Assembly: GCF_003918875.1 (NCBI RefSeq)
Contig: NW_025766936.1
Location: 558,001 to 622,000, forward strand
Source of the DNA: Haliotis rubra
Lineage: Eukaryota
Length of the DNA stretch: 64,000 nucleotides
Direction: 5' to 3'
Position 1 is the first letter of the stretch; every line of letters begins with the position of its first letter. This document shows positions 7,327 to 57,331 of this stretch, in pieces. The notes under the pieces were generated by a model. The model was not told the origin of the DNA and did no database searches. It saw nothing but the letters and a program-made list of their open reading frames with translations. A program made the position numbers and the translations under genes.

Positions 7327-8396
7327 TAAACTAGCGTCCAAAAGAAACACCACCAAATATGTTTTCTGGTCTAAAGCAAAACAAAAGCAAGTTATGGTAA
7401 CATTAAATGTTTTATTGCAAAAAGCAATCATTCGGCAACAATATTTAATGGATAACAAGAACAAAATCGGCGCAGCTCGTGATCTAATGTCACATGAATG
7501 ACATTGGGGTGCACTGTCCAGTATTCGATCACCAATGCAGAATCGACTGTTAGCTTTTACAACTTTCTGGGCAGCACATATTGTTCAATACCCGTCCCAA
7601 AGGTGCTCAACTGGGAACAGATCGGGCGACCTCGTCCGTGAAACTTGAAGAGCTGGAACCTGCTTTCGTCACTATAGAGCACTCTTCGCCAGTTTGGCTG
7701 CTGCCAGTGTAGCACAGTCCTGGTCCATCTCAATATGGCACGTCGGTGTTGGCACGTCAACGTCATGCCCTTAAAAGGTCGACAGGCACGGAGATTATGA
7801 TGGCGGAGTCGTCTGGCTACAGTGTGTTTGCTGACTGAATGTCCAAGGCTGTTGGCGCTTGATGACGTCTCAGTGACGTATCGGTTCCTCAGGTGAAACA
7901 CCTGTAAATACTGGACTTCTTGTTGGGTAGTGACCTTCGGTCTAACACTCCTTGGCCTGTCTGCAATAACTGCCAGTCTGTCGTAGACATGTGACAAGTC
8001 TGGCGATGGTGGATTTGCAGCATCCCATTGCCCTAGCCACATGACATTGTGCTGCTCCCATTTGTAGCTTACCGACTGCTCTCTCCCTCTGCTCTGCTGT
8101 TAAACGAGGCATGTTCCTGGTTGTCAATCAATTAACATGATGAAAGAGAATAAACCTGGTGAGCTTTTATACCCTAATATCATACGGGTAACTATTTGTG
8201 CACACTTTCCAATTTACGCGTGTAAATTCGGGTGGTTTTCTTTCATTAAATACGAAATGCACGCGCAAGTGTTCACAGGGAATAGACATGTTGTGTTCGA
8301 GAGATGTGTTTTTAGCTATTTTCGAACAGATTGACAATTATTTTGAAAATTTACAATCATTTTTATTTGGTGACGTTTCTTTTGGACGCAGGTTTA
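7327..8396 (-). mobile_element. Tc1/mariner-family DNA transposon remnant, internally deleted, with TIRs
   Basis: TIRs taaactagcgtccaaaagaaacaccaccaaat (7327) and atttggtgacgtttcttttggacgcaggttta (ends 8396) with terminal TA. Frameshifted transposase: paired-like HTH MPRLTAEQRERAVGKLQMG..., GRPK-like SVRPKVTT, and first catalytic Asp in WRRVLYSDESRF. The rest of the DDE domain is missing. Confidence 0.9.
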
Positions 8397-10254: not shown

Positions 10255-10683
10255 ACGATGTCAGATTCAGGTAAGATATGTATGTATGCCGGCAGTGAAA
10301 ACTCACAACGGCGGGATCTGCGCACGATGTCAGATTCAGTTAAGATATGAATGTGTGCCGGCAGTGAAAACTCACAACGGCGGGCATCTGCGCACGATGT
10401 CAGATTCAGTTAAGATATGTATGTGTGCCGGCAGTGAAAACTCACAACGGCGGGCGTCTGTGCACGATGTCAGATTCAGTTAAGATATGAATGTGTGCCG
10501 GCAGTGAAAACTCACAACGGCGGGCGTCTGCGCACGATGTCAGATTCAGTTAAGATATGTGTGTGTGCCGGCAGTGAAAACTCACAACGGCGGGCGTCTG
10601 TGCACGATGTCAGATTCAGTTAAGATATGTGTGTGTGCCGGCAGTGAAAACTCACAACGGCGGGCGTCTGCGCTCGATGTCAG
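10255..10683. repeat. 70-bp tandem repeat (6 copies)
   Basis: acgatgtcagattcag...gcgc recurs at 10255, 10324, 10394, 10464, 10534, 10604. Single copy in sister units (17232, 20433, 52264). Confidence 0.95.
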
Positions 10684-11444
10684 GTCACATTTCAGTTGAT
10701 CGAAGCCTACACAACAGGTCGTGATACATGCGCATGCACGTTCAACAAAGACAAGTAAAGGTTAAATTAAACCTGTGGACGTCCTGACAATGGATACGTC
10801 TGCACAACTGTTATTCTACCGAATCGAGAATCCCACGCAACCACTGGCACATGGATTCATCAATGTTCTTCTATCATTTGACGACCATAAACATAAAATA
10901 ACGTTTGACATATAACGTTTGTCAAACGGACACACATAACAATGAAAATGAAATAGAAGATATGTCACACACTCTGAACCAAACATCAGCAGACAAGTAT
11001 AATAACATTTATTCCTCAATACGTGGACAGAAATGTAACAGTGACAATGAAGACTGGACACACATAACCCTACCATACCTGTAATGTGATACATCAGTAG
11101 AAATAAGTACCCCATGCACACTTAAAACAAACCAAAATAATAACATTATGGCCGGATACGTGGACAGACATGCAACAATGACAGCTGGGCGACTGTATTT
11201 CACATCATAGGCAAACAATAGAACTGTCAATAACGTTACTGCATGATGTCAACAATATCCACATATAATGTAAACATGGGATTCTCCAGCCTGTGCAGCT
11301 GGGGCATGGCCGTAAATCCTCGTTAGTTGGTAGAGAATACTGACAACCAACCGTTAGTTAAATATCAGATCATCCTATTGTCTCTGTGTCCTTCGGTTAC
11401 CTGTCAAAATGTTTATATTTACAATAATCATGGTTTCCGTAATA

Positions 11445-12686
11445 TCAGAAATATGATATCTTCAGGAAAAAACCCACTGTTGTAATGATGAACAGCATGA
11501 AAAACAAAAAGAAGAAAATCCTGCTCATCATTCTGCTGACTCGCTTCCAGGTCATTGGTGGTGGATTCCATGATTCATTCGACTTCTTGTCCAGTGACAG
11601 GATCTCCGTACCAACAGCAGGAGTGCCAAAGATGCATCTCTCCCAGGACCTTGTCATACGTCCCATCCACGACGGAACAGGTCTGATGGCTGAGTCCCGA
11701 TGGAACACTTGCACAATCCAGATGGTCAGGAACACGTAGAGAGAGCTCATGATAAACAGGCCAACAAGAAAGATAGTAAACATAGGTAACGAGTCACCAT
11801 TCTGTGGCAGCATTCCAGTGACGAAGGACAGGGATACAGTGAAAGACAGCAACACTGTGATGGCAAAGGACACCTTCTCGCCAGACTCCACAGGAATGAG
11901 GAACACCACCACATTCACTAATCCAAGCACCAAGACAGGCAGGAGAGTTGTCAGTATCGCCAAAGATGGCTTTCTCTTCAGGCTCATTTTGTAGTATACC
12001 CAAGGAAAATATTTGCCACTGTTTCCAAAGACAACTCTTGATGCAGATGTGTTAGTGATATCCCACTGGCTGTTGGAGTTATACAAACTTAATCCTATAG
12101 AGTTATTTGTCGATCTTAAATCAACTTCTTTCAGACCATTTCTCCAATCAAACGTCTCATAAGTACATTCCTGTTCATCCAAAGGAAAGTTGGTAACATC
12201 CATTTGGCAGAAAGTCTTGAAGGTATCGCCAGGTGACCAAGTCACAATTCCTTCGGCGGTCACTTTCATAACCCCAAAGTCGAGACCCAGAGGCTCAGCA
12301 TCAACCACCTGGTTCCAAACTGTGATGTAAGGTCTCCAAACCTTCCCATAGTCAGGATTTATTTCACTGATTCCTCCATATTCACTGGCGTTCCAGGTTA
12401 GAAACTCATCTTTCCAGGAAACTAAGAAAAACCCGTTAGCTGTCACTGTCTGAGTAACGTCATCAAAATTAGATATGCTGAGAAGGTAAAGTTCCAATGA
12501 GACCGTGATAGAGTCACTGCTGTTCTTGACTGGTCTGACATTTGGGTTGTTGTTTCTGATGATGTCATTGTGTAGGCGAAGTACATGGTGGTCGTCCTGA
12601 CCTCTAGTTGCCCCCAGAAACAACAGTAGACACAGTCCACAGGTCACTCCCTTAAGGTGTCGCACCCCTAGCCCCAAAAAATACAT
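11445..12686 (-). CDS. Divergent nAChR-like Cys-loop ligand-gated ion channel subunit, copy 1 (413 aa, no intron in CDS)
   Basis: Signal peptide, NVRPV, WKDEFLTWN, VWRP, Cys-loop CQMDVTNFPLDEQEC (C-x13-C), pre-M1 KRKP, M1, GEK-M2 (VSFAITVLLSFTV), M3, short loop, M4. No loop C CC. 4-codon deletion in the signal peptide relative to paralogs. Confidence 0.95.
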   Translation of the reverse strand: MYFLGLGVRHLKGVTCGLCLLLFLGATRGQDDHHVLRLHNDIIRNNNPNVRPVKNSSDSITVSLELYLLSISNFDDVTQTVTANGFFLVSWKDEFLTWNASEYGGISEINPDYGKVWRPYITVWNQVVDAEPLGLDFGVMKVTAEGIVTWSPGDTFKTFCQMDVTNFPLDEQECTYETFDWRNGLKEVDLRSTNNSIGLSLYNSNSQWDITNTSASRVVFGNSGKYFPWVYYKMSLKRKPSLAILTTLLPVLVLGLVNVVVFLIPVESGEKVSFAITVLLSFTVSLSFVTGMLPQNGDSLPMFTIFLVGLFIMSSLYVFLTIWIVQVFHRDSAIRPVPSWMGRMTRSWERCIFGTPAVGTEILSLDKKSNESWNPPPMTWKRVSRMMSRIFFFLFFMLFIITTVGFFLKISYF

Positions 12687-13614
12687 CCTCTGCCTTGTAC
12701 TTCAACAGCAATGTGCGTATTCCGATATGCTTTGAGGCAGTAGTGCGCAGTTAACCAAGCACCACCTCACGGTGACGACACAATTAAGGTCTATATCGTT
12801 TTTAGTGTACTGATCATATTGCGAAATGTGATTCATTAACACATACAAAGAATAGCAAACAGAAACCTTTCAGTGATACATTAATGCATTCATGCCTGCA
12901 GGCTATATAGTAATTGAAACGGACAAAAACCGTTTAGAAAATGTAAACGTTACAATAAAAGCATTATTTATTGACGACAATCAATGTAATTGTACCCGTG
13001 AGCTCTCCTGCCTACATCTCTCCACAATAGTCTGTATAATGTCACTTTTTAGAGTTAGAGTTGTCTGACATAACAATACAATATAGGCAGCAAAACACTT
13101 TCCATAATCATAAACCATTCCTGTTAAAAGAAACATTTGTACTATGCCGACCCACCAATGATTCGATCACGATTCCAATAAAAGGTATTTCAAACTGTTC
13201 CCTTCTTCTCAAGAATCCTTACTTCACTGCTTCCGTTTTCTTATGGGTAAATAGTTCTTAATTTCTCGCTTTCTCGACTCTGTCACCATGGGGTAGCATG
13301 TTGACCTATGATGGCAATAGTGAAATGTTCTTAATTACTGATTTATTTGTTTTAAAAATGTACGCTTATGAGCTTTCAATGTAATTTCCAAAATCAACTT
13401 GATCAAAAGGAGTTATAAAAAAATGTTTGCAATAATTTTTCATAAAGGATTCCATTCCTTTTGTCCAAAGATTAATAATGCTCACAGAAGTCTAATATGT
13501 AACTTTAAAGTGATTAAATCTGACGGTATTTTAGGGAGCGTGTGTATGTGTAACGTTTGTCTGCATGATATACATAATTTCCAACGCTCACACATTTAGC
13601 CTAAAAATAGAATG

Positions 13615-16560
13615 GTAGTCACGCCACACTGTCAACCAAGTCATCAAGTAAGACCACGCCACGCTGTCAACCAAGTCATCAAGTATCTCCACGAAACAGT
13701 TATCAAACATGACCACGTCAAATTATCAAAATATTAAGAGGTAAAACAACGCCGTATCGTCAGCGAAAATATAAAGCAAAAACACTATCAACCTAGTCAT
13801 TACGCATGACCATGCCACACTATCAGCAAAGCCATCAATCCTGACCACCACCACGTCATCAAGCATGACCACATGGCACTGTCAACTATGTCATACAGAA
13901 TGACCACACAACACTATAAACACTATAAAGTCATCAAACATAACCACATTATACTTTCAACCAAGTTAGCAAGCCTGGCCAAGCCACACTATCAACCATG
14001 TCACAGAGAATGACCATCAAACAAATCAGCAAGCATGACGATGCCACACTATGAACCAAGTCATCAAGCATGACCACACATCAACAACGCTATCAAACAT
14101 TATCAACCATATCATCTAGCATGGCCATGCTAAAGTATCGTAACACGTAACACGATCAATTAACTTATCAAGCATGACCACATCACACTATCAACGAGGT
14201 CATCAAGCATGACCACACTATGAACCAAGTTCTCTAGCGTGACCACACCACACTATCAAAGAGGTCATCAAGCATGACCACACTATCAACCAAGTTATCT
14301 AGCGTGACCACACTACACTATCAACGAGGTCATCAAGCATGACCACACTATCAACCAAGTTATCTAGCGTGACCACACCACACTATCAACGAGGTCATCA
14401 AGCATGACCACACTATCAACCAAGTTATCTAGCGTGACCACACCACACTATCAACGAGGTCATCAAGCATGACCACACTATCAACCAAGTTATCTAGCGT
14501 GACCACACCACACTATCAACGAGGTCATCAAGAATGACCATAATATCAACCACGTTATCTAACGTGACCACACAACACTATCAACGAGGTCATCAAGCAT
14601 GACCACACTATCAACCAAGTTATCTAACGTGACCACACCACACTATCAACGAGGTCATCAAGCATGACAACACTATCAACCAAGTTATCTAACGTGACCA
14701 CACCACACTATCAACGAGGTCATCAAGCATGACCACACTATCAACCAAGTTATCTAGCGTGACCACACCACACTATCAACGAGGTCATCAAGCATGACCA
14801 CACTATCAACCAAGTTATCTAGCGTGACCACACCACACTATCAACCAAGTTATCTAACGTGACCACACCACACTATCAACGAGGTCATCAAGCATGACCA
14901 CACTATCAACCAAGTTATCTAGCGTGACCACACCACACTATCAACGAGGTCATCAAGCATGACCACACTATCAACCAAGTTATCTAACGTGACCACACCA
15001 CACTATCAACGAGGTCATTAAGCATGACTACAATATCAACCAAGTAATCTAGCGTGACCACACTACACTATCAACGAGGTCATCAAGCATGACCACACTA
15101 TCAACCAAGTCATCTAGCGTGACCACACTACACTATCAACGAGGTCATCAAGCATGACCACACTATCAACCAAGTTATCTAGCGTGACCACACCACACTA
15201 TCAACGAGGTTATCAAGCATGACTGCACTATCAACCAAGTTATCTAGCGTGACCACACCACACTATCAACGAGGTCATCAAGCATGACCACACTATCAAC
15301 CAAGTTATCTAACGTGACCACACCACACTATCAACGAGGTCATCAAGCATGACTACAATATCAACCAAGTTATCTAGCGTGACCACACTACACTATCAAC
15401 GAGGTCATCAAGCATGACCACACTATCAACCAAAGCATTATCTATCTAGCGTGACCACACCACACTATCAACGAGGTCATCAAGCATGACCACACTATCA
15501 ACCAAGTTATCTGGCGTGACCACACCACACTATCAACGAGGTCATCAAGCATAACCACACTATCAACCAAGTTATCTAACGTGACCACACCACACTATCA
15601 ACGAGGTCATCAAGCATGACCACACTATCAACCAAGTTATCTAGCGTGACCACACAACACTATCAACGAGGTCATCAAGCATGACCACACTATCAACCAA
15701 GTTATCTAGCGTGACCACACCACACTATCAACGAGGTCATCAAGCATAACCACACTATCAACCAAGTTATCTAACGTGACCACACAACACTATCAACGAG
15801 GTCATCAAGAATGACCACACTATCAACCAAGTTATCTAACGTGACCACACCACACTATCAACGAGGTCATCAAGCATGACCACACTATCAACCAAGTTAT
15901 CTAGCGTGACCACACTACACTATTAACGAGGTCATCAAGCATGACCACACTATCAACCAAGTTATCTAACGTGACCACACCACACTATCAACGAGGTCAT
16001 CAAGCATGACCACACTATCAACCAAGTTATCTAGCGTGACCACACCACACTATCAACGAGGTCATCAAGCATGACCACACTATCAACCAAGTTATCTAGC
16101 GTGACCACACCACACTATCAACGAAGTCATCAAGCATGACCACACTATCAACCAAGTTATCTAGCGTGACCACACCACACTATCAACGAGGTCATCAAGC
16201 ATGACCACACTATCAACCAAGTTATCTAGCGTGACCACACCACACTATCAACGAGGTCATCAAGCATAACCACACTATCAACCAAGTTATCTAGCGTGAC
16301 CACACCACACTATCAACGAGGTCATCAAGCATGACCACACTATCAACCAAGTTATCTAGCGTGACCACACCACACTATCAACGAGGTCATCAAGCATGAC
16401 TACACCGCGCTATCAAGCATGACCATGAAACACTATCAATCAAGTTATCAAGCATGACCACGCCATATTGTCAACGAAGTCATCAAGCATGACCACGCCA
16501 TATTGTCAACGAAGTCATCAAGCATGACAACGCCACACGTCAACCAATCATTCAAGCAGG
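13615..16560. repeat. 35-bp satellite array upstream of copy 1; core (~14165-16400) is a 65-bp dimer (35+30 bp), ~34 copies
   Basis: Unit gaggtcatcaagcatgaccacactatcaac-caagttatctagcgtgaccacaccacactatcaac, with degenerate 35-mers at both edges. Confidence 0.95.
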
Positions 16561-18195: not shown

Positions 18196-19452
18196 TCAGA
18201 AATATGATATCTTCAGGAAAAACACCACTGTTGTAATGATGAACAGCATGAAAAACAAAAAGAAGAAAATCCTGCTCATCATTCTGCTGACTCGCTTCCA
18301 GGTCATTGGTGGTGGATTCCATGATTCATTCGACTTCTTGTCCAGTGACAGGATCTCCGTACTTCCAACAGCAGGAGTGCCAAAGATGCATCTCTCCCAG
18401 GACCTTGTCATACGTCCCATCCACGACGGAACAGGTTTGATGGCTGCGTCCCGATGGAACACTTGAACGGTCCAGATGGTCAGGAACACGTAGAGAGAGC
18501 TCATGATAAACAGGCCAACAAGAAAGATAGTAAACACAGGTATACTGTCAGCGTTCTGTGGCAGCAGTCCAGTGACGAAGGATAGGGATACAGTGAAAGA
18601 TAGCAACACCGTGATGGCAAAGGACACCTTCTCTCCAGACTCCACAGGAATGAGGAACACCACCACATTCACTAATCCCAGCACCAGGATAGGCAGGAGA
18701 GTTGTCAGTATCGCCAAAGATGGCTTTCTCTTCAGGCTCATTTTGTAGTGTACCCAAGGATAATAGCTGCCACTGTGTCCAAGGACAAGTCTTGATGCAG
18801 ATGTGTTGGTGATATCCCATTGGCTGTTGGAGTCAAACAAATTTAATCCTATAGAGTTATTAGTCGGTCTTAAATCAACTTCTTTCAGACTAGTTCTCCA
18901 ATCAAACGTCTTATAGGTACACTCCTGTTCATCCAAAGGAAAGTTGGTAACATCCATTTGGCAGAAAGTCTTGAAGGTATCGCCAGGTGACCAAGTCACA
19001 ATTCCTTCGGCGGTCACTTTAATGACACCAAAGTCGAGTCCCAGAGGTTCAGCGTCAACCACCTGGTTTCGAATTGCAATATAAGGTCTCCAAACCTTCC
19101 CATAGTCAGGATTTATTTCATTGATACCTCCATACTCGCTGACGTTCCAGGTTAGAAACTCATCTTTCCAGGAAACTAAGAAAAACCCATTGGCTGTCAC
19201 TGTCTGAGTAACTTCATCAAAATCAGATATGCTGAGAAGGTGAAGTTCCAATGAGACCGTGATAGAGTCACTGCTGTTCTTGACTGGTCTGACATTTGGG
19301 TTGTTGTTTCTGATGATGTCATTGTGTAGTCGAAGTACATGGTGGTCGTCCTGACCTCTAGATGTCCCCAGGAACAACAGTAGACACAGTCCACATGTCA
19401 CTCCCTTGAGGTGACCCACCCCTCGCTCTGTGAACAGCCCCAACACGTACAT
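18196..19452 (-). CDS. Divergent nAChR-like Cys-loop receptor subunit, copy 2 (418 aa)
   Basis: Full-length paralog of copy 1 with the same Cys-loop, GEK-M2 and 4 TM. Loop C RLVLGHSGSYYPW. One-codon insertion (GSTE) in the M3-M4 loop. Confidence 0.95.
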   Translation of the reverse strand: MYVLGLFTERGVGHLKGVTCGLCLLLFLGTSRGQDDHHVLRLHNDIIRNNNPNVRPVKNSSDSITVSLELHLLSISDFDEVTQTVTANGFFLVSWKDEFLTWNVSEYGGINEINPDYGKVWRPYIAIRNQVVDAEPLGLDFGVIKVTAEGIVTWSPGDTFKTFCQMDVTNFPLDEQECTYKTFDWRTSLKEVDLRPTNNSIGLNLFDSNSQWDITNTSASRLVLGHSGSYYPWVHYKMSLKRKPSLAILTTLLPILVLGLVNVVVFLIPVESGEKVSFAITVLLSFTVSLSFVTGLLPQNADSIPVFTIFLVGLFIMSSLYVFLTIWTVQVFHRDAAIKPVPSWMGRMTRSWERCIFGTPAVGSTEILSLDKKSNESWNPPPMTWKRVSRMMSRIFFFLFFMLFIITTVVFFLKISYF

Positions 19453-21357: not shown

Positions 21358-22310
21358 TCAGAGATTTGATATCTTCAGAAATCCACACACTGTTGCAATG
21401 ATGAACAGCATGAAAACCAAAAAGAAAAATATCCTGCTCATCATTCTGCTGACTCGCTTCCAGGTCATTGGTGGTGGATTGCACGATTCATTCGACTTCT
21501 TGTCCAGTGACAGGATCTCCGTACCAACAGCAGGAGTGCCAAAGATGCATCTCTCCCAGGACCTTGTCAAACGTCCCATCCACGACAGAACAGATCTGAT
21601 GGTTTCGTCCCGATGGAACACTTGCACGATCCAGATGGTCAGGAACACGTAGAGAGAGCTCATGATAAACAGGCCAACAAGAAAGATAGTAAACACAGGT
21701 ATACTGTCACCGTTCTGTGGCAGCAGTCCAGTGACGAAGGATAGGGATACAGTGAAAGACAGCAACACCGTGATGGCAAAGGACACCTTCTCACCAGAAT
21801 CCACAGGAATGAGGAACACCACCACATTCACTAACCCCAGCATCAGGACAGGCAGGAGAGTTGTCAGTATCGCTAAAGATGGCTTTCTCTTCAGGCTCAG
21901 CTCGTAGTATACAAAAGGAATATATATGCCACTGGTTTCAAAGACAACCCTTGACGCAGATGTTTTGATGATATCCCATTGGCTGTTGGCGTTGAACAAA
22001 TTTAATCCTATAGAGTTATTAGTCGGCCTTAAATCAACTTCTTTCAGACCATTTCTCCAGTCAAACGTCTTATATATACACTCCTGTTCATCAAGAAAGG
22101 AAAGTTGGTAACATCCATTTGGCAGAAAATCTTGAAGGTATCGCCAGGTGCCCATGTTACAATTCCTTCGGCGGTCACTTTAATGACCCCAAAGTCGAGA
22201 CCCAGAGGCTCAGCATCAACCACCTGGTTCCGGATTGTGATGTAAGGTCTCCAAACATTCCCATAGTCAGGATGTATTTCACTGATTCCTCCATATTCAC
22301 TGGCGTTCCA
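21358..22310 (-). pseudogene. nAChR-like copy 3, pseudogene (5' third deleted, frameshift in the Cys-loop)
   Basis: Homology to paralogs stops at the codons for WNASEY (22310); signal peptide and N-terminus are absent. A +2 insertion at ~22093 (catcaagaaagg vs catccaaagg) shifts the frame, so the ORF-track N-terminus MGTWRYLQ... is out of frame. Confidence 0.92.
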
Positions 22311-22463
22311 ACTTTTTTAATTTTAGGACATAAATTCTGCAAACAAATTACAGAGTTGGTCTGACGTCTTGATTATGATCAGTGTTTCATTGAGTATTTT
22401 ATGTTTATTAGTTTTCGAGTTAGATTCCAATTCATCAGTCCGCTTTTTAGCCAAACGGACTAT
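22309..22463. mobile_element. Right arm only of the TA-MITE seen complete at 31574-31956
   Basis: ttttaggacataaattctgcaaacaaattacagagttgg...agccaaacggactata matches 31811-31956 and is fused directly to the truncated copy 3. Confidence 0.85.
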
Positions 22464-22779: not shown

Positions 22780-24115
22780 AGGAATGACCACGCCACACGG
22801 TAAACCAAGTCATCAATCATGACCATGCCGAAAGATATACCAAGTCATCAATCATGACCACGCAACGCTATCAACCAAGTCATCAATCATGACCACGCAA
22901 CGCTATCAACCAAGTCATCAAGCCTGACCATGCCACACTATCAACCAAGTCATCAACCCTGATCACGCCAAGTCATCCAAGTCATCAAGCCTGACCATGC
23001 CACACTATCAACCAAGTCATCAAGCCTGACCATGCCACACTATCAACCAAGTCATCAAGACTGACCATGCCACACTATCAACCAAGTCATCAAGCCTGAC
23101 CATGCCACACAATCGATCAAGTCATATAGCCTGACCATGCCACACAATCGATCAAGCCATCAAGCCTGACCATGCCACACTATCGACCAAGTCATATAGC
23201 ATGACCATGCCACACTATCAGTCAAGTCATCAAGCCTGACCATGCCACACTATCGACCAAGTCATATAGCATGACCACGCCACACTATCAACCAAGTCAT
23301 CAAGCCTGACCATGCCACACTATCAACCAAGTCATCAAGCCTGACCATGCCACACTATCGACCAAGTCATATAGCATGACCATGCCACACTATCGACCAA
23401 GTCATATAGCATGACCATGCCACACTATCAACCAAGTCATCAAGCCTGACCATGCCACACTATCAACCAAGTCATATAGCATGACCATGCCACACTATCA
23501 ACCAAGTCATATAGCATGACCATGCCACACTATCAACCAAGTCATATAGCATGACCATGCCACACTATCAACCAAGTCATATAGCATGACAATGCCACAC
23601 TATCGACCAAGTCATCAAGCCTGACCATGCCACACTATCAACCAAGTCATATAGCATGACCTTGCCACACTATCAACCAAGTCATATAGCATTACAATGC
23701 CACACTATCAACTAAGTCATCAAGCCTGACCATGCCACGCTATCGACCAAGTCATATAGCATGACAATGCCACACTATCGATCAAGTCATCAAGCCTGAC
23801 CATGCCACGCCATCAACCAACTCATATAGCATGACAATGCCACACTATCGACCAAGTCATCAAGCCTGACCATGCCACGCTATCAACCAAGTCATATAGC
23901 ATGACCATGCCACACTATCGACCAAGTCATATAGCATGACAATGCCACACTATCGACAAGTCATCAAGCCTGACCACGCCACACTATTTACCAAGTCATA
24001 TAGCATGACCATGCCACACTATCAACCAAGTCATCAAGCCTGACCACACCACACTATCGACCAAGTCATCAAGCCTGACCATGCCACACTATCGACCAAT
24101 CATTCAAGCAGGACC
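22780..24115. repeat. 35-bp satellite array upstream of copy 3 (~38 copies)
   Basis: Unit caagtcat(caagcc/atagca)tgaccatgccacactatc(a/g)ac. Confidence 0.95.
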
Positions 24116-24363
24116 ACCAGATCCCTGCAGTAAGTGCCAGTCAGTGAGGACATGTGCAACCAAAAGGTCAGTGTACGGGAACGTATCGTCTTGTCATCTT
24201 GACATGCTGACAGTGATGTGTATTCGGCTTATTTTTCTGTCTACAATAAAATCAATGGAATGACTAAACCTGACCTTTGTTGTTGAAACAGTGATTGAAA
24301 ATCTTTGATGAAAGCAAATTATTTTTGTCCAATGAAATTTGAACAATATGGACGTGCTCTTAG

Positions 24364-26063
24364 AATAGAATAGAATAATACTTTAATGCCTTTTCAGGAA
24401 TTCGTATTACATCAGCAGAGCTACTGACACATTAGAGAGATACCAAACATATTTACATAAATTCTTTGATTTAGGTATCTTCACTTTTGTTTAAGAGAGA
24501 TATGGTACTTGCAATAAAGGATGTACGGGCTCTCATAGTTTTCACAATTGGAACTTTGTAGCGGCGGCCTGAAGGGAGGAGGTTGTATTCCGAATTTAAG
24601 TAGTGAGTACGGTCAGATATGATTTTGACATCTTGATTCACGATTTTCCGCTCATATATTGATGATAAACATTCAAATCTGACTCCAGCCATTTTACTTG
24701 CAGTGTTTTGTCTATTTTAGATTTGAGATGAACTGAGAGAGACCCGTACCAACAATGGAAGGAAAATGTTAAAATACTCTGAATAAATCCTACATAAAAA
24801 GATGACATCACAGATGGGTTAACATAAAAAGATCTCACTTTACGCATGAGATGAAGACGTTGTTGACACCTTTTGTGTAGGGATTCAGTGTTAGAGTTCC
24901 AGTTCAGCTTAGAGTCAATGAAGGTTCCCAGATACTTATACTCCGACACTGTCTCAAAACATTCACTGTTGATTATCACTGGAAGCATTTCTGTGGGTTT
25001 ACTCCGAAAGTCAATTATCAGTTCCCTTTTTTGGTGACATTTAAGATTAAGTGGTTTTCTGCACACCAAGTCGTAAAATGATTAATGTCCTCTTTTTCCA
25101 GTTTTTCAGAATCAGTGTCGTTCAGTTTGCCGACAATTGCTGCATCATCTGCGAACTTTACAGTTGAACAGATTGAATTCGAGCTTGCACAATCATTAGT
25201 GTAGAGGGTGAAAAGAACAGGAGATATTACACAGCCTTGTGGTGCACCAGTGTTGGTGGTCCGTTTACTCGATACAGCCCCGTTAACTGTCACGTACTGC
25301 TGTCTGTCCACAAGAAAGTTTTCGATCCACTTGATGAGGTATGAGTTAACGCCCATGTCTAACAGTTTCTGTATCATGATATGTGGCTGGATAGTGTTGA
25401 ACGCAGATGAAAAGTCAACGAAGAGGATCCGGATGTATGACTTAGGTGTTTCTAGATGTTTATAGACATTATTAAGGAGTGACAGTGTGGCATCAACAAC
25501 TCCTCTCCTTGACCTGTAGGCGAACTGAAGCGGGTCCAGTATGTCGGCAACTTCCTGACGGAGATGTCTCAACAAGATGCGTTCCAGCGACTTCATTGCT
25601 ATAGATGTGAGAGCAACTGGCCTGTAGTCGTTGAGTTCTTTAGATTGTGTCTTTTTAGGAACTGGTACAATTTCTGATGTTTTCCAGACCGAAGGAATAA
25701 CGTGTGTAGTCACTGAGAATTGATACAATCTAGTGAAAACTGTACACAGTTGAAGTCTGCACTCCTTCAACACAATGCCGTCAAGGTTGTCAGGTCCTTT
25801 TGCTTTTCTGATGTTAATTCTGGAGAAGCTTTGAATGACGTCAGCTTCTGATATATGGATACGACTTTCACTATCCTGTACGGCTTCACTAACTTGAGCT
25901 CTCTCATTGGTAAAGTCGTGACAATCAAAGCGGCTGTAGAAAGTGTTAAGGTCCTCAGCAAAGGTTTTATTATCCCCGGCGTTGGTTGTCTGTCGTCGCC
26001 TGCTCTTGCCAATCATCGTGTTCACGCCTTGCCAGGCTTGTTGCAGATTGCTTTGCTGAAACT
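24364..26063 (-). mobile_element. 5'-truncated Rex1/Babar-like (CR1-group) LINE with reverse transcriptase
   Basis: ORFs 25018-26025, 24638-25069 and 24471-24692 join by frameshifts: KAKGPD, DYRPVALTS, LFVDFSSAFNTI, GAPQGCVISPVLF, KFADD, YKYLG, C-terminal QQRLHLMRK...SILTFSFHCWYG, LPSGRRY. (ctatt)n 3' tail. Empty site gacgtgctcttagtacccaac at 37160. Confidence 0.92.
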
Positions 26064-29291: not shown

Positions 29292-30545
29292 TTAGAAATG
29301 TGACATCTTCAGAAACACACACACTGTTGCTATGATGAACAGCATGAAAAACAAAAAGAAAAATATCCTGCTCATCATTCTGCTGACTCGCTTCCAGGTC
29401 ACTGGTGGTGGATTGCATGATTCATTCGACTTCTTGTCCAGTGACAGGATCTCCGTACCAACAGCAGGAGTGCCAAGGATGCATCTCTCCCAGGACCTTG
29501 TCATACGTCCAATCCACGACGGAACAGGTTTGATGGCTGCGTCCCGATGGAACACTTGCACGATCCAGATGGTCAGGAACACGTAGAGAGAGCTCATAAT
29601 AAACATGCCAACAAGAAAGATAGTAAACATAGGTAACGAGTCACCATTCTGTGGCAGCAGTCCAGTGACGAAGGACAGGGATACAGTGAAAGACAGCAAC
29701 ACCGTGATGGCAAAGGACAGCTTCTCGCCAGACTCCACAGGAATGAGGAACACCACCACATTCACTAATCCCAGCACCAGGACAGGCAGGAGGGTTGTCA
29801 GAATCGCCAAAGATGGCTTTCTCTTCAGGCTCATTTTGTAGTATACAAAAGGAATATATCTGCCACTGGTTTCAAAGACAACCCTTGACGCAGATGTGTT
29901 GATGATATCCCACTGACCGTTAGAATTAAATAAATCTAATCCTATTGAGTTATTAGTCGGTCTTAAATCAACTTCTTTCAGACCATTTCTCCAGTCAAAC
30001 GTCTTATATATACACTCCTGTTCATCCAAAGGAAAGTTGGTAACATCCATTTGGCAGAAAGTCTTGAAGGTATCGCCAGGTGCCCATGTTACAATTCCTT
30101 CGGCGGTAACTTTAATGACCCCAAAGTCGAGTCCCAGGGGCTCAACGTCAACCACCTGGTTCCGGATTGTGATGTAAGGTCTCCAAACCTTCCCATAGTC
30201 AGGATTTATTTCACTGATTCCTCCATACTCACTGGCGTTCCAGGTTAGAAACTCATCTTTCCAGGAAACTAAGAAAAACCCGTTAGCTGTCACTGTTTGA
30301 GTAACTTCATCAAAATCAGACATGCTGAGAAGGTAAAATTCTAAAGAGACCGTGATAGAGTCACTGCTGTTCTTGACTGGTCTGACATTTTGGTTGTTGT
30401 TTGTGATGATGTCATTGTGTAGTCGAAGTACATGGTGGTCGTCCTGACCTCTAGATGCCCCCAGGAACAACAGCAGACACAGTCCACATGTCACTACCTT
30501 GAGATGACGCAGCCCTAGCTCTGTGAACAGCCCCAACACGTACAT
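29292..30545 (-). CDS. Divergent nAChR-like Cys-loop receptor subunit, copy 4 (417 aa)
   Basis: Full-length paralog. Loop C RVVFETSGRYIPF; GEKL. Confidence 0.95.
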   Translation of the reverse strand: MYVLGLFTELGLRHLKVVTCGLCLLLFLGASRGQDDHHVLRLHNDIITNNNQNVRPVKNSSDSITVSLEFYLLSMSDFDEVTQTVTANGFFLVSWKDEFLTWNASEYGGISEINPDYGKVWRPYITIRNQVVDVEPLGLDFGVIKVTAEGIVTWAPGDTFKTFCQMDVTNFPLDEQECIYKTFDWRNGLKEVDLRPTNNSIGLDLFNSNGQWDIINTSASRVVFETSGRYIPFVYYKMSLKRKPSLAILTTLLPVLVLGLVNVVVFLIPVESGEKLSFAITVLLSFTVSLSFVTGLLPQNGDSLPMFTIFLVGMFIMSSLYVFLTIWIVQVFHRDAAIKPVPSWIGRMTRSWERCILGTPAVGTEILSLDKKSNESCNPPPVTWKRVSRMMSRIFFFLFFMLFIIATVCVFLKMSHF

Positions 30546-31956: not shown

Positions 31957-32289
31957 ATAATATTTTATAAAGATTTCCATTCCTATTGACCAAGGGTTAT
32001 TGACGCTCTCGGAAATATACAATCATAATAATCATTATCAATGTCATTCCTAAATCGGACAAGCGCGTATTCTTAACTAGCCCAAGATGAAGAAACATAC
32101 TCCAACAAATTCATGTCAGACTTGTCATTACAGGGAAACATCTCCCCAACTTTCAAGGTATTGAATAATGGAAAGGGCTTATAGTCTATATTCTGGATTA
32201 ACTTGTATTTGACGTTGCTTTCGTTGCGCAGCTACAATCGGAGAACGGAAAAAAGAATAACCGGATAACATGACAAATTAAAAAGCAAG

Positions 32290-35200
32290 TCGTCAAGAAT
32301 GACCACGCCACACTATCAACCAAGTCATCAAGCATGACCACCCCAAACGATATACCAAGTCATCAAACATGACCATGCCACACTATCAACCAAGTCATCA
32401 AACATGACAATACAACACTATCAACCAAGTCATCAAGCATGACAATACTACACTATCAACCAAGTCATCAAGCATGACAATACAACACTATCAACCAAGT
32501 CATCAAGCATGACAATACAACACTATCAACCAAGTCATCAAGCATGACAATACAACACTATCAACCAAGTCATCAAGAATGACAATACAACACTATCAAC
32601 CAAGTCATCAAACATGACAATACAACACTATCAACCAAGTCATCAAACATGACAATACCACACTATCAACCAAGTCATCAAGCATGACAATACAACACTA
32701 TCAACCAAGTCATCAAGCATGACAATACTACACTATCAACCAAGTCATCAAGCATGACAATACAACTCTATCAACCAAGTCATCAAGCATGACAATACTA
32801 CACTATCAACCAAGTCATCAAGCATGACAATACTACACTATCAACCAAGTCATCAAACATGACAATACTACACTATCAACCAAGTCATCAAACACGACAA
32901 TACCACACTATCAACCAAGTCATCAAGCATGACAATACAACACTATCAACCAAGTCATCAAGCATGACAATACAACACTATCAACCAAGTCATCAAGCAT
33001 GACAATACTACACTATCAACCAAGTCATCAAACATGACAATACAACACTATCAACCAAGTCATCAAGCATGACAATACTACACTATCAACCAAGTCATCA
33101 AGCATGACAATTCAACACTATCAACCAAGTCATCAAGCATGACAATACCACACTATCAACCAAGTCATCAAGCATGACAATACAACACTATCAACCAAGT
33201 CATCAAGCATGACAATACTACACTATCAACCAAGTCATCAAACATGACAATACAACACTATCAACCAAGTCATCAAACATGACAATACCACACTATCAAC
33301 CAAGTCATCAAACATGACAATACAACACTATCAACCAAGTCATCAAGCATGACAATACTACACTATCAACCAAGTCATCAAGCATGACAATACCACACTA
33401 TCAACCAAGTCATCAAGCATGACAATACCACACTATCAACCAAGTCATCAAGCATGACAATACAACACTATCAACCAAGTCATCAAGTATGACAATACTA
33501 CACTATTAACCAAGTCATCAAGCATGACAATACTACACTATCAACCAAGTCATCAAACATGACAATACTACACTATCAACCAAGTCATCAAACACGACAA
33601 TACCACACTATCAACCAAGTCATCAAGCATGACAATACAACACTATCAACCAAGTCATCAAGCATGACAATACAACACTATCAACCAAGTCATCAAGCAT
33701 GACAATACTACACTATCAACCAAGTCATCAAACATGACAATACAACACTATCAACCAAGTCATCAAGCATGACAATACTACACTATCAACCAAGTCATCA
33801 AGCATGACAATTCAACACTATCAACCAAGCCATCAAGCATGACAATACCACACTATCAACCAAGTCATCAAGCATGACAATACAACACTATCAACCAAGT
33901 CATCAAGCATGACAATACTACACTATCAACCAAGTCATCAAACATGACAATACAACACTATCAACCAAGTCATCAAACATGACAATACCACACTATCAAC
34001 CAAGTCATCAAACATGACAATACAACACTATCAACCAAGTCATCAAGCATGACAATACTACACTATCAACCAAGTCATCAAGCATAATAATACAACACTA
34101 TCAACCAAGTCATCAAGCATGACAATACCACACTATCAACCAAGTCATCAAGCATGACAATACAACACTATCAACCAAGTCATCAAGCATGACAATACAA
34201 CACTATCAACCAAGTCATCAAACATGACAATACAACACTATCAACCAAGTCATCAAACATGACAATACCACACTATCAACCAAGTCATCAAGCATGACAA
34301 TACAACACTATCAACCAAGTCATCAAGCATGACAATACTACACTATCAACCAAGTCATCAAGCATGACAATACAACTCTATCAACCAAGTCATCAAGCAT
34401 GACAATACTACACTATCAACCAAGTCATCAAGCATGACAATACTACACTATCAACCAAGTCATCAAACATGACAATACTACACTATCAACCAAGTCATCA
34501 AACACGACAATACTACACTATCAACCAAGTCATCAAGCATGACAATACAACACTATCAACCAAGTCATCAAGCATGACAATACAACACTATCAACCAAGT
34601 CATCAAGCATGACAATACTACACTATCAACCAAGTCATCAAACATGACAATACTACACTATCAACCAAGTCATCAAACATGACAATACCACACTATCAAC
34701 CAAGTCATCAAACATGACAATACCACACTATCAACCAAGTCATCAAACATGACAATACTACACTATCAACCAAGTCATCAAGCATGACAATACAACACTA
34801 TCAACCAAGTCATCAAGCATGACAATACCACACTATCAACCAACTTAACAAGCATGACAATACCACACTATCAACCAACTTAACAAGCATTACCATGCCA
34901 CACTATCAACCAAGTCATCAAGCATGACAATACCACACTATCAACCAAGTCAACAAGCATGACAATACCACACTATCAACCAAGTCAACAAGCATGACAA
35001 TGCCACACTATCAACCAACTTAACAAGCATGACAATACCACACTATCAACCAAGTCATCAAGCATGACAATGCCACACTATCAACCAACTTAACAAGCAT
35101 TACCATGCCACACTATCAACCAAGTCATCAAGCATGACAATACAACACTATCAACCAAGTCATCAAGCATGACAATACCACACTATCAACCAAGTCAACA

Positions 35201-36925
35201 AACATGACAATGCCACACTATCAACCAAGTCATCAAGCATGACAATACTACACTATCAACCAACTTAACAAGCATGACAATACCACACTATCAACCAAGT
35301 CAACAAGCATGACAATACCACACTATCAACCAAGTCAACAAGCATGACAATACCACACTATCAACCAAGTCAACAAGCATGACAATGCCACACTATCAAC
35401 CAAGTCAACAAGCATGACAATACCACACTATCAACCAAGTCAACAAGCAAGACAATGCCACCCTATCAACCAAGTCAACAAGCCTGACCATGCCACACTA
35501 TCGACCAAGTCATCAATCATAACCACGCCGAAAGATATACCAGGTCATCAATCATGACCACGCCGAACGATATACCAAGTCATCAAGCATTACCACGCCA
35601 CACTATCAACCAAGTCATCAAAAATGACAATGCAACACTATCAACCAAGTCATCAAACATGACAATTCCACACTATCAACCAAGTCATCAAGCATGACAC
35701 TACCACACTATCGACCAAGTCATCAAGCCTGACAATACTACACTATCAACCAAGTCATCAAGCATGACAATACCACACTATCCACCTAGTCATCAAGAAT
35801 GACAATACCACACTATCAACCAAGTCATCAAACATGACAATACCACACTATCAACCAAGCCATCAAACATGACAATGCGACACTATCAACCAAGTCATCA
35901 AACATGACAATGCAACACTATCAACCAAGTCATCAAGCATGACAATACCACACTATCGACCAAGTCATCAAGCATGACAATACTACACTATCAACCAATT
36001 CATCAAGCCTGACCATGCCACACTATCGATCAAGTCATCAACCCTGACCATGCCACACTATCGATCAAGTCATCAAGCCTGACCATGCCACACTATCAAC
36101 CAAGTCATCAAGCCTGACCATGCCACACTATCAACCAAGTCATCAAGCCTGACAATGCCACACTATCGACAAAGTCATATAGCATGACAATGCCACACTA
36201 TCGATCAAGTCATCAAGCCTGACCACGCCACACTATCGACCTAGTCATCAAGCCTGACCATGCCACACTATCGACCAAGTCATCAAGCATGACCATGCCA
36301 CACTATCGATCAAGTCATCAAGCCTGACCATGCCACACTATCGATCAAATCATATAGCATGACCATGCCACACTATCGATCAAATCATATAGCCTGACCA
36401 TGCCACACTATCGACCAAGTCATCAAGCATGACCATGCCACACTATCGATCAAGTCATCAAGCATGACCATGCCACACTATCAACCAAGTCATCAAGCAT
36501 GACCATGCCACACTATCGACCTAGTCATCAAGCCTGACCATGCCACACTATCAACCAAGTCATCAAGCCTGACCACGCCACACTATCAACCAAGTCATCA
36601 AGCATGACCATGCCACACTATCGACAAAGTCATATAGCATGACCGTGCCACACTATCGACCAAGTCATCAAGCATGACCATGCCACACTATCGATCAAGT
36701 CATCAAGCCTGACCATGCCACACTGTCGATCAAATCATATAGCATGACCATGCCACACTATCGACCAAGTCATCAAGCCTGACCATGCCACACTATCAAC
36801 CAAGTCATCAAGCCTGACCATGCCACTCTATCAACTAGGTCATCAAGCCTGACCATGCTACACTATCAACCAACTCATCAAGCCTGACCATGCCACACTA
36901 TCGACCAATCATTCAAGCAGGACCA
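32290..36925. repeat. 35-bp satellite array upstream of copy 4 (~130 copies)
   Basis: Unit caagtcatcaagcatgacaatac(a/t/c)acactatcaac. The distal part (~36000-36900) switches to the unit-3 type (catgccacac). Confidence 0.95.
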
Positions 36926-39965: not shown

Positions 39966-41525
39966 AAATACATTATACTGATCTACGTCCTGACCACGAG
40001 ATACGTCTGTACAGCTGTTATTCTACCGAATACATTAAAGTGAACTAAGTCCTGACCACGGATACGTCTGTACAGCTGTTATTCTACCGAATACATTAAA
40101 CTGATGTTCGTCCTGACCACGAGATACGTCTGTACAGCTGTTATTCTACCGAATACATTAAACTGATGTACGTCCTGACCACGGATACGTCTGTACAGCT
40201 GTTATTCTACCGAATACATTAAACTGATGTACGTCCTGACCACGGATACGTCTGTACAGATGTTATTCTACCAAATACATTAAACTGATCTACGTCCTGA
40301 CCACGGATACGTTTGTACAGATGTTATTCTACCGAATACATTAAACTGATGTACGTCGTGACCACGGATACGTCTGTACAGCTGTTATTCTACCAAATAC
40401 ATTAAACTGATGTACGTCGTGACCACGAATACGTCTGTACAGCTGTTATTCTACCGAATACATTAAACTGATGTACGTCGTGACCACGGATACGTCTGTA
40501 CAGCTGTTATTCTACCGAATACATTAAACTGATGTACGTCCTGACCACGGATACGTCTGTACAGATGTTATTCTACCGAATACATTAAACTGATGTACGT
40601 CGTGACCATGGATACGTCTGTACAGCTGTTATTCTACCGAATACATTAAACTGATGTACGTCGTGACCACGGATACGTCTGTACAGCTGTTATTCTACCG
40701 AATACATTAAACTGATGTACGTCGTCACCACGGATACGGATGTACAGCTGTAATTCTACCGAATACATTAAACTGATGTACGTCGTGACCACGGATACGT
40801 CTGTACAGCTGTTATTCTACCGAATACATTAAACTGATGTACGTCGTGACCACGGATACGGATGTACAGCTGTAATTCTACCGAATACATTAAACTGATG
40901 TACGTCGTGACCACGGATACGTCTGTACAGATGTTATTCTACCGAATACATTAAACTGATGTACGTCGTGACCACGGATACGTCTGTACAGATGTTATTC
41001 TACCGAATACATTAAACTGATGTACGTCCTGACCACGGATACGTCTGTACAGATGTTATTCTACCGAATACATTAAACTGATGTACGTCCTGACCACGGA
41101 TACGTCTGTACAGCTGTTATTCTACCGAATACATTAAACTGATGTACGTCCTGACCACGGATACGTCTGTACAGATGTTATTCTACCGAATACATTAAAC
41201 TGATGTACGTCCTGACCACGGATACGTCTGTACAGCTGTTATTCTACCGAATACATTAAACTGATGTACGTCGTGACCACGGATACGTCTGTACAGCTGT
41301 TATTCTACCAAATACATTAAACTGATGTACGTCGTGACCACGGATACGGATGTACAGATGTTATTCTACCAAATACATTAAACTGATGTACGTCCTGACC
41401 ACGGATACGTCTGTACAGCTGTTATTCTACCGAATACATTAAACTGATGTACGTCCTGACCACGAGATACGACTGTACAGATGTTATTCTACCGAATACA
41501 TTAAATTAATCTACGTCGTGACCAC
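39966..41525. repeat. 61-bp tandem repeat (~25 copies)
   Basis: aatacattaaactgatgtacgtcctgaccacggatacgtctgtacagctgttattctaccg. Single copy at ~17396, ~20598 and ~52426. Confidence 0.95.
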
Positions 41526-50300: not shown

Positions 50301-50595
50301 AAGACCACACCGCGCTGTCAACTGAGTCATCAAGCAAGACCACACCACACTGTCAACCGAGTCATCAACCAAGACCACACCGCACTGTCAACTGAGTCAT
50401 CAAGCGTGTCCACACCTCGCTATCAACTTTGTCATCAAGCAAGACCACACCGCACTGTCAACTAAGTCATCAAGCGTTACCACACCTCGCTATCAACTAA
50501 GTCATCAAGCAGAACCACACCACGCTGTCAACTATGTCATCAAGCAGGACCACACCTCGCTGTCAACTATGTATAAGTCATTTAGCAGGACCACC
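47345..50595. repeat. 35-bp satellite array upstream of copy 5 (~90 copies)
   Basis: Variant unit ct(a/g)agtcatcaagca(a/g)gaccacaccgc(a/g)ctgtcaa, with the same terminal sequence as the other arrays. Confidence 0.95.
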
Positions 50596-56588: not shown

Positions 56589-57331
56589 TCACATCCTATT
56601 GTGGTCTTCCTTCCACGAGCAGGACTGCCTGACAGTATAGATGTAAACACTCACATCCTATTGTGGTCTTCCTTCCACGAGCAGGACTGCCTGACAGTAT
56701 AGATGTAAACACTCACACCCTATTGTGGTCTTCCTTCCACGAGCAGGACTGCCTGACAGTATAGATGTAAACACTCACATCCTATTGTGGTCTTCCTTCC
56801 ACGAGCAGGACTGCCTGACAGTATAGATGTAAACACTCACATCCTATTGTGGTCTTCCTTCCACGAGCAGGACTGCCTGACAGTATAGATGTAAACACTC
56901 ACATCCTATTGTGGTCTTCCTTCCGAGAGCAGGACTGCCTGACAGTATTGATGTAAACACTCACACCCTATTGTGGTCTTCCTTCCACGAGCAGGACTGC
57001 CTGACAGTATTGATGTAAACACTCACACCCTATTGTGGTCTTCCTTCCACGAGCAGGACTGCCTGACAGTATAGATGTAAACACTCACATCCTATTGTGG
57101 TCTTCCTTCCACGAGCAGGACTGCCTGACAGTATAGATGTAAACACTCACATCCTATTGTGGTCTTCCTTCCACGAGCAGGACTGCCTGACAGTATAGAT
57201 GTAAACACTCACACCCTATTGTGGTCTTCCTTCCACGAGCAGGACTGCCTGACAGTATAGATGTAAACACTCACATCCTATTGTGGTCTTCCTTCCACGA
57301 GCAGGACTGCCTGACAGTATAGATGTAAACT
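56589..57331. repeat. 62-bp tandem repeat (12 copies)
   Basis: cacatcctattgtggtcttccttccacgagcaggactgcctgacagtatagatgtaaacact. Confidence 0.95.

Follow-up and report, generated by a model that had tools for sequence, protein, structure and literature searches.

Binding-loop islands in a homogenised receptor chassis: probable mosaic concerted evolution in a tandem array of nicotinic receptor-like genes of Haliotis rubra

Introduction

Intron-free tandem expansions of nicotinic acetylcholine receptor (nAChR) genes are established in molluscs (PMC6896357), and in Jiao et al. (2019; PMC6896357), whose main text contains no mention of Haliotis, the clustering of paralogues within species was read as expansion after speciation, gene conversion and selection tests not being mentioned. 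The chemotactile receptors (CRs) of octopus represent a pocket-diversified, chassis-conserved nAChR derivative (PMC11526382), and their pocket sites were reported to be under diversifying selection (PMC11526382, Fig. 4d legend); the CR studies of van Giesen (2020), Allard (2023) and Kang (2023) are drawn on here as they are presented in PMC11526382 and in the MolluscaGenes preprint (PMC13174522), in which 'Cys-less', CR-like and other divergent clades are catalogued. In the vertebrate Toll-like receptors TLR1/TLR6 and TLR2A/B, conversion homogenises the signalling and structural parts while the ligand-binding part stays divergent, and in genes of the TLR1 family it restricts how far critical regions diverge while the binding domain becomes more varied (PMC3125219). 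The stretch analysed here, referred to as the window, comprises 64,000 nucleotides of the blacklip abalone Haliotis rubra (contig QXJH01000284.1, 558001-622000; positions below are counted from its first nucleotide) and holds six tandem minus-strand copies of one intron-free gene (c1 to c6), which are six members of an array of at least 12 intron-free genes. The array is of a known kind, an intron-free mollusc nAChR-like tandem array, in which mosaic concerted evolution together with purifying selection is the dominant and better-supported cause of the contrast between divergent binding loops and a uniform remainder of the subunit, here called the chassis.

Distribution of variation among the copies

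The variation was assessed among the five intact copies of the window (c1, c2, c4, c5 and c6), with loop boundaries set beforehand from an alignment to the human alpha7 nAChR. Variable amino-acid columns made up 29 of 78 in loops A-F and 46 of 307 elsewhere (Fisher P=4e-5), a tree-free minimum count placed 40 of 94.5 nonsynonymous changes within loops A-F (P=1e-6), and positions homologous to the agonist contacts of alpha7 were variable in 9 of 14 cases, against 75 of 390 overall (P=2e-4). The Cys-loop (0/15 columns variable), loop D (0/7), the membrane helix M1 (2/26) and M2 with its linker (2/29) showed little or no change, and variation was also observed outside the loops in the signal peptide (11/33), the intracellular domain (ICD; 8/49) and M4 (6/34). 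The first-pass annotation of this DNA, which dealt with 11990-12345 (c1 residues ~114-232, from loop A through loop C), had proposed that divergence is concentrated in loops A, B, C and F and that pore and scaffold are nearly invariant. All 18 loop C, B and F strings quoted there for copies 1-6 are present exactly in the six minus-strand copies, and the identity of the Cys-loop in the intact copies and the near identity of M1 and M2 are borne out by the counts above; the concentration in the loops stands as a whole with loop A contributing only modestly, while near-invariance holds for the Cys-loop, loop D, M1 and M2 but does not extend to the signal peptide, the ICD and M4.

The elements of c1 (11445-12686, minus strand), an intact intron-free nAChR-like subunit gene of 413 amino acids, illustrate the pattern, all of them lying on the minus strand. 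Loop A (12306-12338, residues 117-127) includes Trp124, the equivalent of alpha7 Tyr93 and either Trp or Arg among the copies, and has 3 of 11 columns variable, with a synonymous divergence (dS) of 0.53 and a ratio of nonsynonymous divergence (dN) to dS, omega, of 0.11; loop E (12225-12281, residues 136-154) has 4 of 19 columns variable and omega of 0.24-0.26; the Cys-loop (12165-12209, Cys160-Cys174) is identical in the five intact copies; loop B (12132-12158, residues 177-185) keeps an invariant Trp181, the equivalent of alpha7 Trp149, among varying neighbours, with 6 of 9 columns variable and 10 nonsynonymous (N) to 1 synonymous (S) changes; loop F (12063-12113, residues 192-208) has 8 of 17 columns variable, dS of 0.61 and omega of 0.18-0.24; and loop C (11997-12041, residues 216-230), with Asn222 and Ser223 in place of vicinal cysteines and its hairpin tip at residues 223-224 in the AlphaFold2 (AF2) model, has 8 of 15 columns variable and 14 N to 2 S changes. 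The M1-M3 pore module (11694-11966) retains the -1' Glu of the SGEK motif and the 9' Leu, with 10 of 91 columns variable and omega of 0.26-0.28.

Mosaic history of the coding sequence

The informative sites of the six copies define 22 different mutually incompatible splits, and 53% of informative site pairs fail the four-gamete test. The pairwise homoplasy index (PHI) was significant for the window copies (P<0.0005) and for the third positions of seven H. rubra copies (P=0.005), and five segment trees were better than a single tree by 414 log-likelihood units. Differential groupings were observed when the genes of H. asinina were added: Hasi_a to Hasi_d, the four genes of that species, form a clade in the sequence beyond the loop segment (99/97; 100/99 on third positions only), where the loop-based orthologue pairs are rejected (approximately unbiased (AU) test, P=0.010 and 0.0018), whereas the loop segment itself rejects the species clade (AU P=5e-7; P=0.02 on third positions), with c0, a copy to the left of the window, pairing with Hasi_b (93/85), cm1, likewise to the left of it, with Hasi_a (82/92), c1 and c5 clustering with Hasi_d, and c2 with Hasi_c.

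Divergence levels follow the same division, with dS outside the loop segment of 0.157 between H. rubra paralogues versus 0.335 between orthologues (bootstrap confidence interval of the difference -0.256 to -0.107). By segment, dS between H. rubra paralogues amounts to 0.10-0.17 in the N-terminal extracellular domain (ECD), the transmembrane domain (TMD) and the ICD-M4 part, versus 0.33 in the loop A-E part, and dS between H. asinina paralogues is 0.380 in the loop segment. The non-coding flanks are more diverged (K ~0.3) than the coding synonymous sites (dS 0.13-0.19), and they cluster c1 with c2, and c4 with c5 and c6, unlike the groupings of the loops. Sliding windows reveal three stretches in which paralogues are no closer to one another than orthologues, spanning residues 102-149 with loops A/E, 162-197 with loop B (ratio 2.07) and 198-245 with loops F/C, and a weak fourth island (ratio 1.08) away from the loops, at N-terminal residues 30-53. 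Paralogue/orthologue distance ratios of 0.19-0.75 show that M1-M4, the ICD and the Cys-loop (0.44 for the last) are homogenised. Among Sawyer-type tracts, c4-c0 in M2-M3 (P=0.0005) alone survives correction, and the runs c1-c5 in loop A/E (P=0.02) and c5-c0 in loop B (P=0.14) are suggestive only. The copy c5 has a loop A/E cassette in common with c1, but its flanks cluster with c4 and c6, and its loop B (AWGSD) is similar to the c0 type. The array is under partial concerted evolution, in which short conversion tracts homogenise the genes and islands at the binding loops escape.

Public DNA runs X3 and X6 yielded, over 11300-12800, contigs in pieces of 70-200 nt, with word depths of 1000-1900 on the conserved parts and 140-550 over loops C, F and B, as is expected if many genomic paralogues have the chassis sequence in common but not the loops.

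Synonymous and nonsynonymous change

Differential patterns of change were also observed among the loops themselves. Loops A, E, F and D carry 16 N and 22 S changes (omega 0.20; 0.63 S changes per S site), the sequence outside the loops 54.5 N and 54.5 S (omega 0.29; 0.26 S changes per S site), and loops B and C 24 N and 3 S (omega 2.2; 0.19 S changes per S site). Compared with the non-loop background, loops A, E, F and D have significantly more synonymous change (P=9e-4). In loops A, E and F, synonymous divergence is two to four times that of the rest, with individual omega values of 0.11-0.26, and along the gene its values lie between ~0, in the ICD core, and 0.7-0.8 changes per site, near loops A/E and F. 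The amino-acid differences in loops A, E, F and D accompany old synonymous divergence. For loops B and C, the N:S ratio of 24:3 versus ~70:76 in the rest of the gene represents an 8.7-fold excess (Fisher P=9e-5), with omega not significantly above 1 (P=0.13), and their dN of 0.21-0.22, at a dS of 0.08, is close to the dS of the local segment (0.22). Taken over all loops, omega is 0.44 versus 0.29 in the rest (Fisher N:S P=0.16).

Between six H. rubra/H. asinina orthologue pairs, omega is 0.21 in loops A-F, 0.19 in the rest, 0.23 in loop B and 0.46 in loop C, and the loops are under purifying selection between orthologues. Multi-residue loop motifs are common across the species in the pairs c0/Hasi_b, cm1/Hasi_a, c7/P0014 and P0017/P0018, and together with the constraint on orthologue loops they indicate that the pocket of each lineage is therefore maintained once established. 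The elevation of both dS and dN around loops A, E and F could also be expected if the copies had arisen by duplication after the species split and the loop-coding stretches mutated faster, without any gene conversion. This is very improbable, since orthologue dS is equal in loops (0.31) and rest (0.29), by which a mutation hotspot as the source of the high loop dS was rejected; the pairing of H. rubra loop segments with specific H. asinina genes, the rejection of species monophyly there, on third positions too, and the greater divergence of the non-coding flanks over coding synonymous sites also argue against it.

The ICD core (c1 ~11560-11690 and its equivalents) is the most homogenised stretch, with 97.6% nucleotide identity and dS of ~0.01 among the window copies; it carries 1 S and 9 N changes, several of them private to single copies, and looks like the product of a recent conversion sweep followed by near-neutral change, constraint at the RNA level being another possibility.

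Tests for positive selection

Site models were fitted with an own GY94-F3x4 likelihood, whose M0 value equals that of IQ-TREE exactly (-6194.665). With 13 sequences on one whole-gene tree, twice the log-likelihood difference (2dlnL) for M1a/M2a was 22.9 (P ~1e-5), and for the loop segment on the whole-gene tree it was 15.5 (P=0.00044), M8a/M8 being strongly significant too. Recombination is expected to inflate single-tree statistics in this way, and as recombination is demonstrated here, the single-tree significance was discarded as evidence of selection. When the same 13 sequences were analysed on the five segment trees, 2dlnL fell to 1.47 for M1a/M2a (P=0.48), 4.77 for M7/M8 (P=0.09) and 0.36 for M8a/M8 (P=0.55). 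For the B-F-C segment, the 13 sequences on its own tree gave 6.66 for M1a/M2a (P=0.036) and 5.34 for M8a/M8 (P=0.02), and 18 sequences, with the orthologue pairs included, gave 0.65 (P=0.72) and 0.57 (P=0.45); the branch-site test with the window copies as foreground was not significant (2dlnL ~0). Sites in the class with omega>=1 number 11 of 15 in loop C, 5 of 9 in loop B, 0 of 15 in the Cys-loop and 7 of 91 in M1-M3. No site reached a posterior of 0.95 for omega >1, the best being Lys225 at the tip of loop C (0.6-0.7).

These results bear on the possibility that loops A, B, C and F change in amino acids under recurrent diversifying selection for ligand specificity, with pore and scaffold simply conserved, which was the reading of the first-pass annotation. 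The 8.7-fold N:S excess of loops B and C, the variability of 9 of the 14 pocket-homologous positions, the B-F-C result with 13 sequences, the location of the best single site at the tip of loop C and the report of diversifying selection on octopus CR pocket sites (PMC11526382) speak for it, and the posterior site classes match the map of change drawn in that annotation, with loops B and C high and the Cys-loop at zero. Yet its M7/M8 comparison, proposed to follow recombination screening, is not significant with partitions; omega is 0.44 over loops A-F, with low values and raised dS in loops A, E and F; the excess of omega over 1 in loops B and C is not significant; the gene-wide partitioned likelihood-ratio tests are not significant, the signal is lost with 18 sequences and in the branch-site test, and its strength on a single tree is as expected from recombination; and orthologue loops show omega of 0.21, with no site at a posterior of 0.95. 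Two findings that the annotation itself had named as contrary to its reading are relevant: synonymous divergence is raised in the same segments for loops A, E and F (0.63 versus 0.26), and dN/dS does not exceed 1 over all loops, although loops B and C stand at 2.2. What remains of the reading is change at pocket-homologous positions and the excess in loops B and C, positive selection not being demonstrated, and recurrent diversifying selection is considered unlikely as the general driver.

A class with omega = 1 fits ~35% of the codons of the whole gene and 45% of those of the B-F-C segment, which would suit relaxed constraint, whereby the least constrained parts of partly redundant young H. 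rubra copies (loops B, C and F, the ICD and the signal peptide) drift near-neutrally under birth-and-death turnover. The similarity of dN in loops B and C to local dS, the 9 N to 1 S changes of the ICD and the fact that c3 is already a pseudogene agree with this; the orthologue omega of 0.23 in loop B and 0.21 in loops A-F, the multi-residue loop motifs common across species and the full open reading frames (ORFs), with pore and Cys-loop intact, of five of the six copies do not, and as a full account it is as unlikely as recurrent diversifying selection. For loops B and C, the data do not separate weak positive selection from relaxed constraint.

Protein family and putative binding site

The family assignment is based on Pfam domains Neur_chan_LBD (E 6.9e-40) and Neur_chan_memb (E 2.4e-15), both past the curated cut-offs, and on the human alpha7 nAChR as the best PDB sequence match of c1 (E 1e-49). 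The AF2 model of c1 (pLDDT 87.4, pTM 0.75) displays the beta-sandwich strands of the ECD and helices M1-M4, and its top 50 Foldseek matches are all nAChR chains (TM 0.74-0.82, E ~1e-34). The Cys-loop, C-QMDVTNFPLDEQE-C, has 13 residues between its cysteines and an FPxD motif in all five intact copies. The SGEK motif (-1' Glu) and the 9' Leu of M2 align to alpha7 M2, and the 18 aligned family genes depart from them only by a Ser within SGEK in a single H. asinina gene; the channels are probably selective for cations.

The putative pocket was assigned from a HMMER alignment to alpha7 together with textbook contact residues, an alignment that is uncertain by 1-2 residues in loop C. No Cys-Cys pair occurs anywhere in loop C of the copies, and the positions aligned to alpha7 Cys190/Cys191 hold Asn, His or Thr followed by Ser. 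In the aromatic box for acetylcholine (ACh), made up in alpha7 of Tyr93, Trp149, Tyr188, Tyr195 and the complementary Trp55, the Trp149 equivalent alone is kept, the other positions being occupied by Trp or Arg (Tyr93), Phe or Leu (Tyr188), Phe, Tyr or Ile (Tyr195) and Phe (Trp55). Since the cysteine pair of loop C is lacking and most of the aromatic box is lost, the copies are probably orphan, cation-selective, non-cholinergic subunits of the nicotinic branch of Cys-loop channels, as judged from sequence and predicted fold. In c1, residues 124 (12315-12317) and 177 (12156-12158) align to alpha7 Tyr93 and Lys145; Trp124 pairs with Glu177 in c1, c5 and H. asinina gene d, and in the remaining close copies Arg124 is found together with Lys, Met or Ile at 177, a pairing common to both species.

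Origin of the contrast between loops and chassis

The contrast is probably the outcome of mosaic concerted evolution, in which gene conversion between paralogues homogenises the chassis while binding-loop islands of old lineages persist, combined with purifying selection. The mosaic history, the dS pattern, the orthologue constraint and the variability at pocket-homologous positions are the observations behind it. Purifying selection would hold the Cys-loop, loop D and M1-M3 (omega ~0.15-0.3), and short-tract conversion between paralogues would even out most of the coding sequence within a species, while small islands around loops A/E, B and F/C would escape or resist conversion and keep older lineage-specific sequence, which would explain why synonymous divergence is high in loops A, E and F. 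The loop cassettes appear to mark at least four paralogue lineages older than the split of H. rubra and H. asinina and conserved by purifying selection since, and a roughly neutral rate of change seems to be confined to loops B and C of the young H. rubra copies. The islands may persist through selection against converted binding sites or because their divergence blocks conversion, the former being the explanation we infer, and the common chassis (Cys-loop, loop D, M1-M3 and ICD) would ensure compatible gating and possibly co-assembly. Cassettes may occasionally be transferred, with c5, whose loop A/E is as in c1 and whose flanks are as in c4 and c6, as a candidate. Because the N:S ratio of loops B and C far exceeds that of the rest, the ligand specificity of the copies has very probably diverged, a view resting on the homology of the loop positions to alpha7 contact residues.

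Several points weigh against mosaic concerted evolution as the full account. Within the loop segment, dS between H. rubra paralogues (0.214) does not differ significantly from that between orthologues (0.259), so the islands must be small and the contrast rests in part on few synonymous sites. The low dS (0.08) and high dN (0.21) of loops B and C are not as retained old sequence predicts and fit recent adaptive or relaxed change better. The B-F-C result with 13 sequences is borderline positive for a segment chosen post hoc (P=0.02-0.04), and segment trees built from 39-97 codons may absorb homoplasy or multiple hits, giving less power to the partitioned tests. The comparison covers two species, H. 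rubra and H. asinina, and the H. rubra record is a draft assembly in which polishing errors among near-identical paralogues could exaggerate homogenisation; to this last concern it may be answered that the species clade holds for the chromosome-level H. asinina genes too.

The array and neighbouring features

The array extends past both ends of the window, with c0 and cm1 to the left and c8, P0017 and one further gene to the right, and its right end adjoins a very large SRCR/LDLa/CUB/trypsin multidomain gene. The array of H. asinina ends next to the same kind of gene (L007:1-3598 and L008:1-6193 for the two species), so the whole cluster is syntenic between the two species. Besides c1, whose type I loops have Trp124 and Glu177 and a loop C that ends in ..FPW, the window holds c2 (18196-19452, minus strand; intact ORF, 418 amino acids), of loop type II with Arg and Lys at c1 positions 124 and 177 and a loop C end ..YPW; c4 (29292-30545, minus strand; intact ORF, 417 amino acids), of type III with Arg, Lys and ..IPF; c5 (44704-45957, minus strand; intact ORF, 417 amino acids); and c6 (52980-54233, minus strand; intact ORF, 417 amino acids), a variant of type III with Arg at 124 and Met at 177. 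The pseudogene c3 (21358-22313, minus strand), delimited by tblastn pieces, a three-frame reading and nucleotide alignment, lacks the first ~96 codons, homology beginning at codon ~97, and contains a 2-nt insertion (22095-22096) that shifts the frame within the Cys-loop; its 3' half is still one ORF of 265 codons. At the right edge the start of c7 (63879-64000, plus strand), found by tblastn, represents a more distant family member with 76% identity to c1 that runs off the window; it corresponds to P0009 (L005:10001-11242), and its well-conserved H. asinina orthologue P0014 departs from it at one residue next to loop B, where Thr beside the Cys becomes Ser, and at four within loop C. The orientation of the array flips at c7, which points away from c6.

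Minisatellite arrays at 14150-16405, 22785-24116, 32286-36923 and 47379-50569 lie ~0.5-2 kb upstream of c1, c3, c4 and c5; they are built of up to 132 copies, with 87-95% matches, of a related unit of 35 bp (or 65 bp as a double unit). These arrays were duplicated along with the genes, and they might favour conversion or unequal exchange. Unrelated tandem repeats at 232-1154, 10255-10683, 39967-41525, 56585-57330 and 58014-62254, with units of 47, 70, 61, 62 and 120/235 bp, occupy much of the intergenic space. A reverse-transcriptase ORF (25018-26025; RVT_1, E 2e-32) lies between c3 and c4, and a remnant of a Tc1/mariner-type transposase (7557-8042; HTH_Tnp_Tc3_2) to the left of c1. An antisense ORF of 169 codons (44744-45253, plus strand) opposite the 3' half of c5 was rejected as a gene and is most likely due to chance, since antisense open stretches vary in place and length among the 18 family genes.

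Expression, possible role and significance

Among the runs on record as RNA, none was found to hold these genes, and in two possible RNA runs the contigs cover only 79-203 nt of conserved TMD/ICD sequence, at a depth of ~3 and not assignable to one copy. By analogy with known receptor families, the copies may serve as a sensory repertoire. A wider proposal, rather doubtful at present, is that abalone arrays constitute a chemoreceptor repertoire evolved independently of the CRs, in which conversion would keep a shared gating and pore chassis for co-assembly while the A/E, B and F/C cassettes are protected and occasionally shuffled, giving combinatorial pockets at the subunit interfaces. If the channels are sensory, this would represent a second, independent recruitment of nicotinic receptors to chemosensation in molluscs.

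Run on a single gene tree, a standard PAML-type test would have been taken as 'confirmation' of positive selection at this locus (2dlnL 22.9), a signal that is gone once recombination is respected, and the same trap of the single tree concerns every tandem receptor array in mollusc genomes as well as published readings of within-species clustering as recent expansion. The loop islands (c1 residues ~102-149, 162-197 and 198-245) define paralogue lineages across species and offer natural cassettes for chimeras with which the channels might be de-orphanised.

Comparison with known systems

Like the mollusc nAChR expansions (PMC6896357), the abalone array consists of intron-free tandem genes with an nAChR-like fold, substitutions at agonist residues and paralogues that cluster by species; unlike in the reading of Jiao et al., species clustering is seen here only in the sequence beyond the binding loops, and conversion accounts for it best. 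Compared with human alpha7 nAChR, the copies show ~25-27% identity over the ECD and M1-M3 and share the 13-residue Cys-loop, the Trp149 equivalent, SGEK and the 9' Leu, but Cys190/Cys191 are replaced by Asn/Ser and similar residues, the aromatic box is mostly replaced, the intracellular loop has only ~47 residues, and the 20' Glu is Gly.

With the cephalopod CRs the array has in common its nAChR derivation, intron-free clustered genes, variation focused on the pocket and a conserved channel architecture. ACh-binding residues are lost in the CRs, with mostly hydrophobic or aromatic residues instead, and the ACh-site residues of the abalone copies are also replaced; unlike in the CRs, diversifying selection is not demonstrated in the abalone array. 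None of the 87 best protein matches is a cephalopod protein, the best outside Haliotis being from heterobranch gastropods at <=39% identity, and the array therefore looks, from sequence similarity, like a vetigastropod expansion independent of the cephalopod CRs; CR chains were likewise absent from the 60 best PDB sequence matches and the 50 best Foldseek matches.

The vertebrate TLRs (PMC3125219) resemble the array in the conflicting phylogenies along the gene and in paralogues that are closer to one another than orthologues outside the binding region. Unlike in the TLRs, the unconverted parts form several islands of ~30-50 codons interleaved with the homogenised Cys-loop and not one large domain, and the genes belong to a pentameric ion channel family present in many copies and not two.

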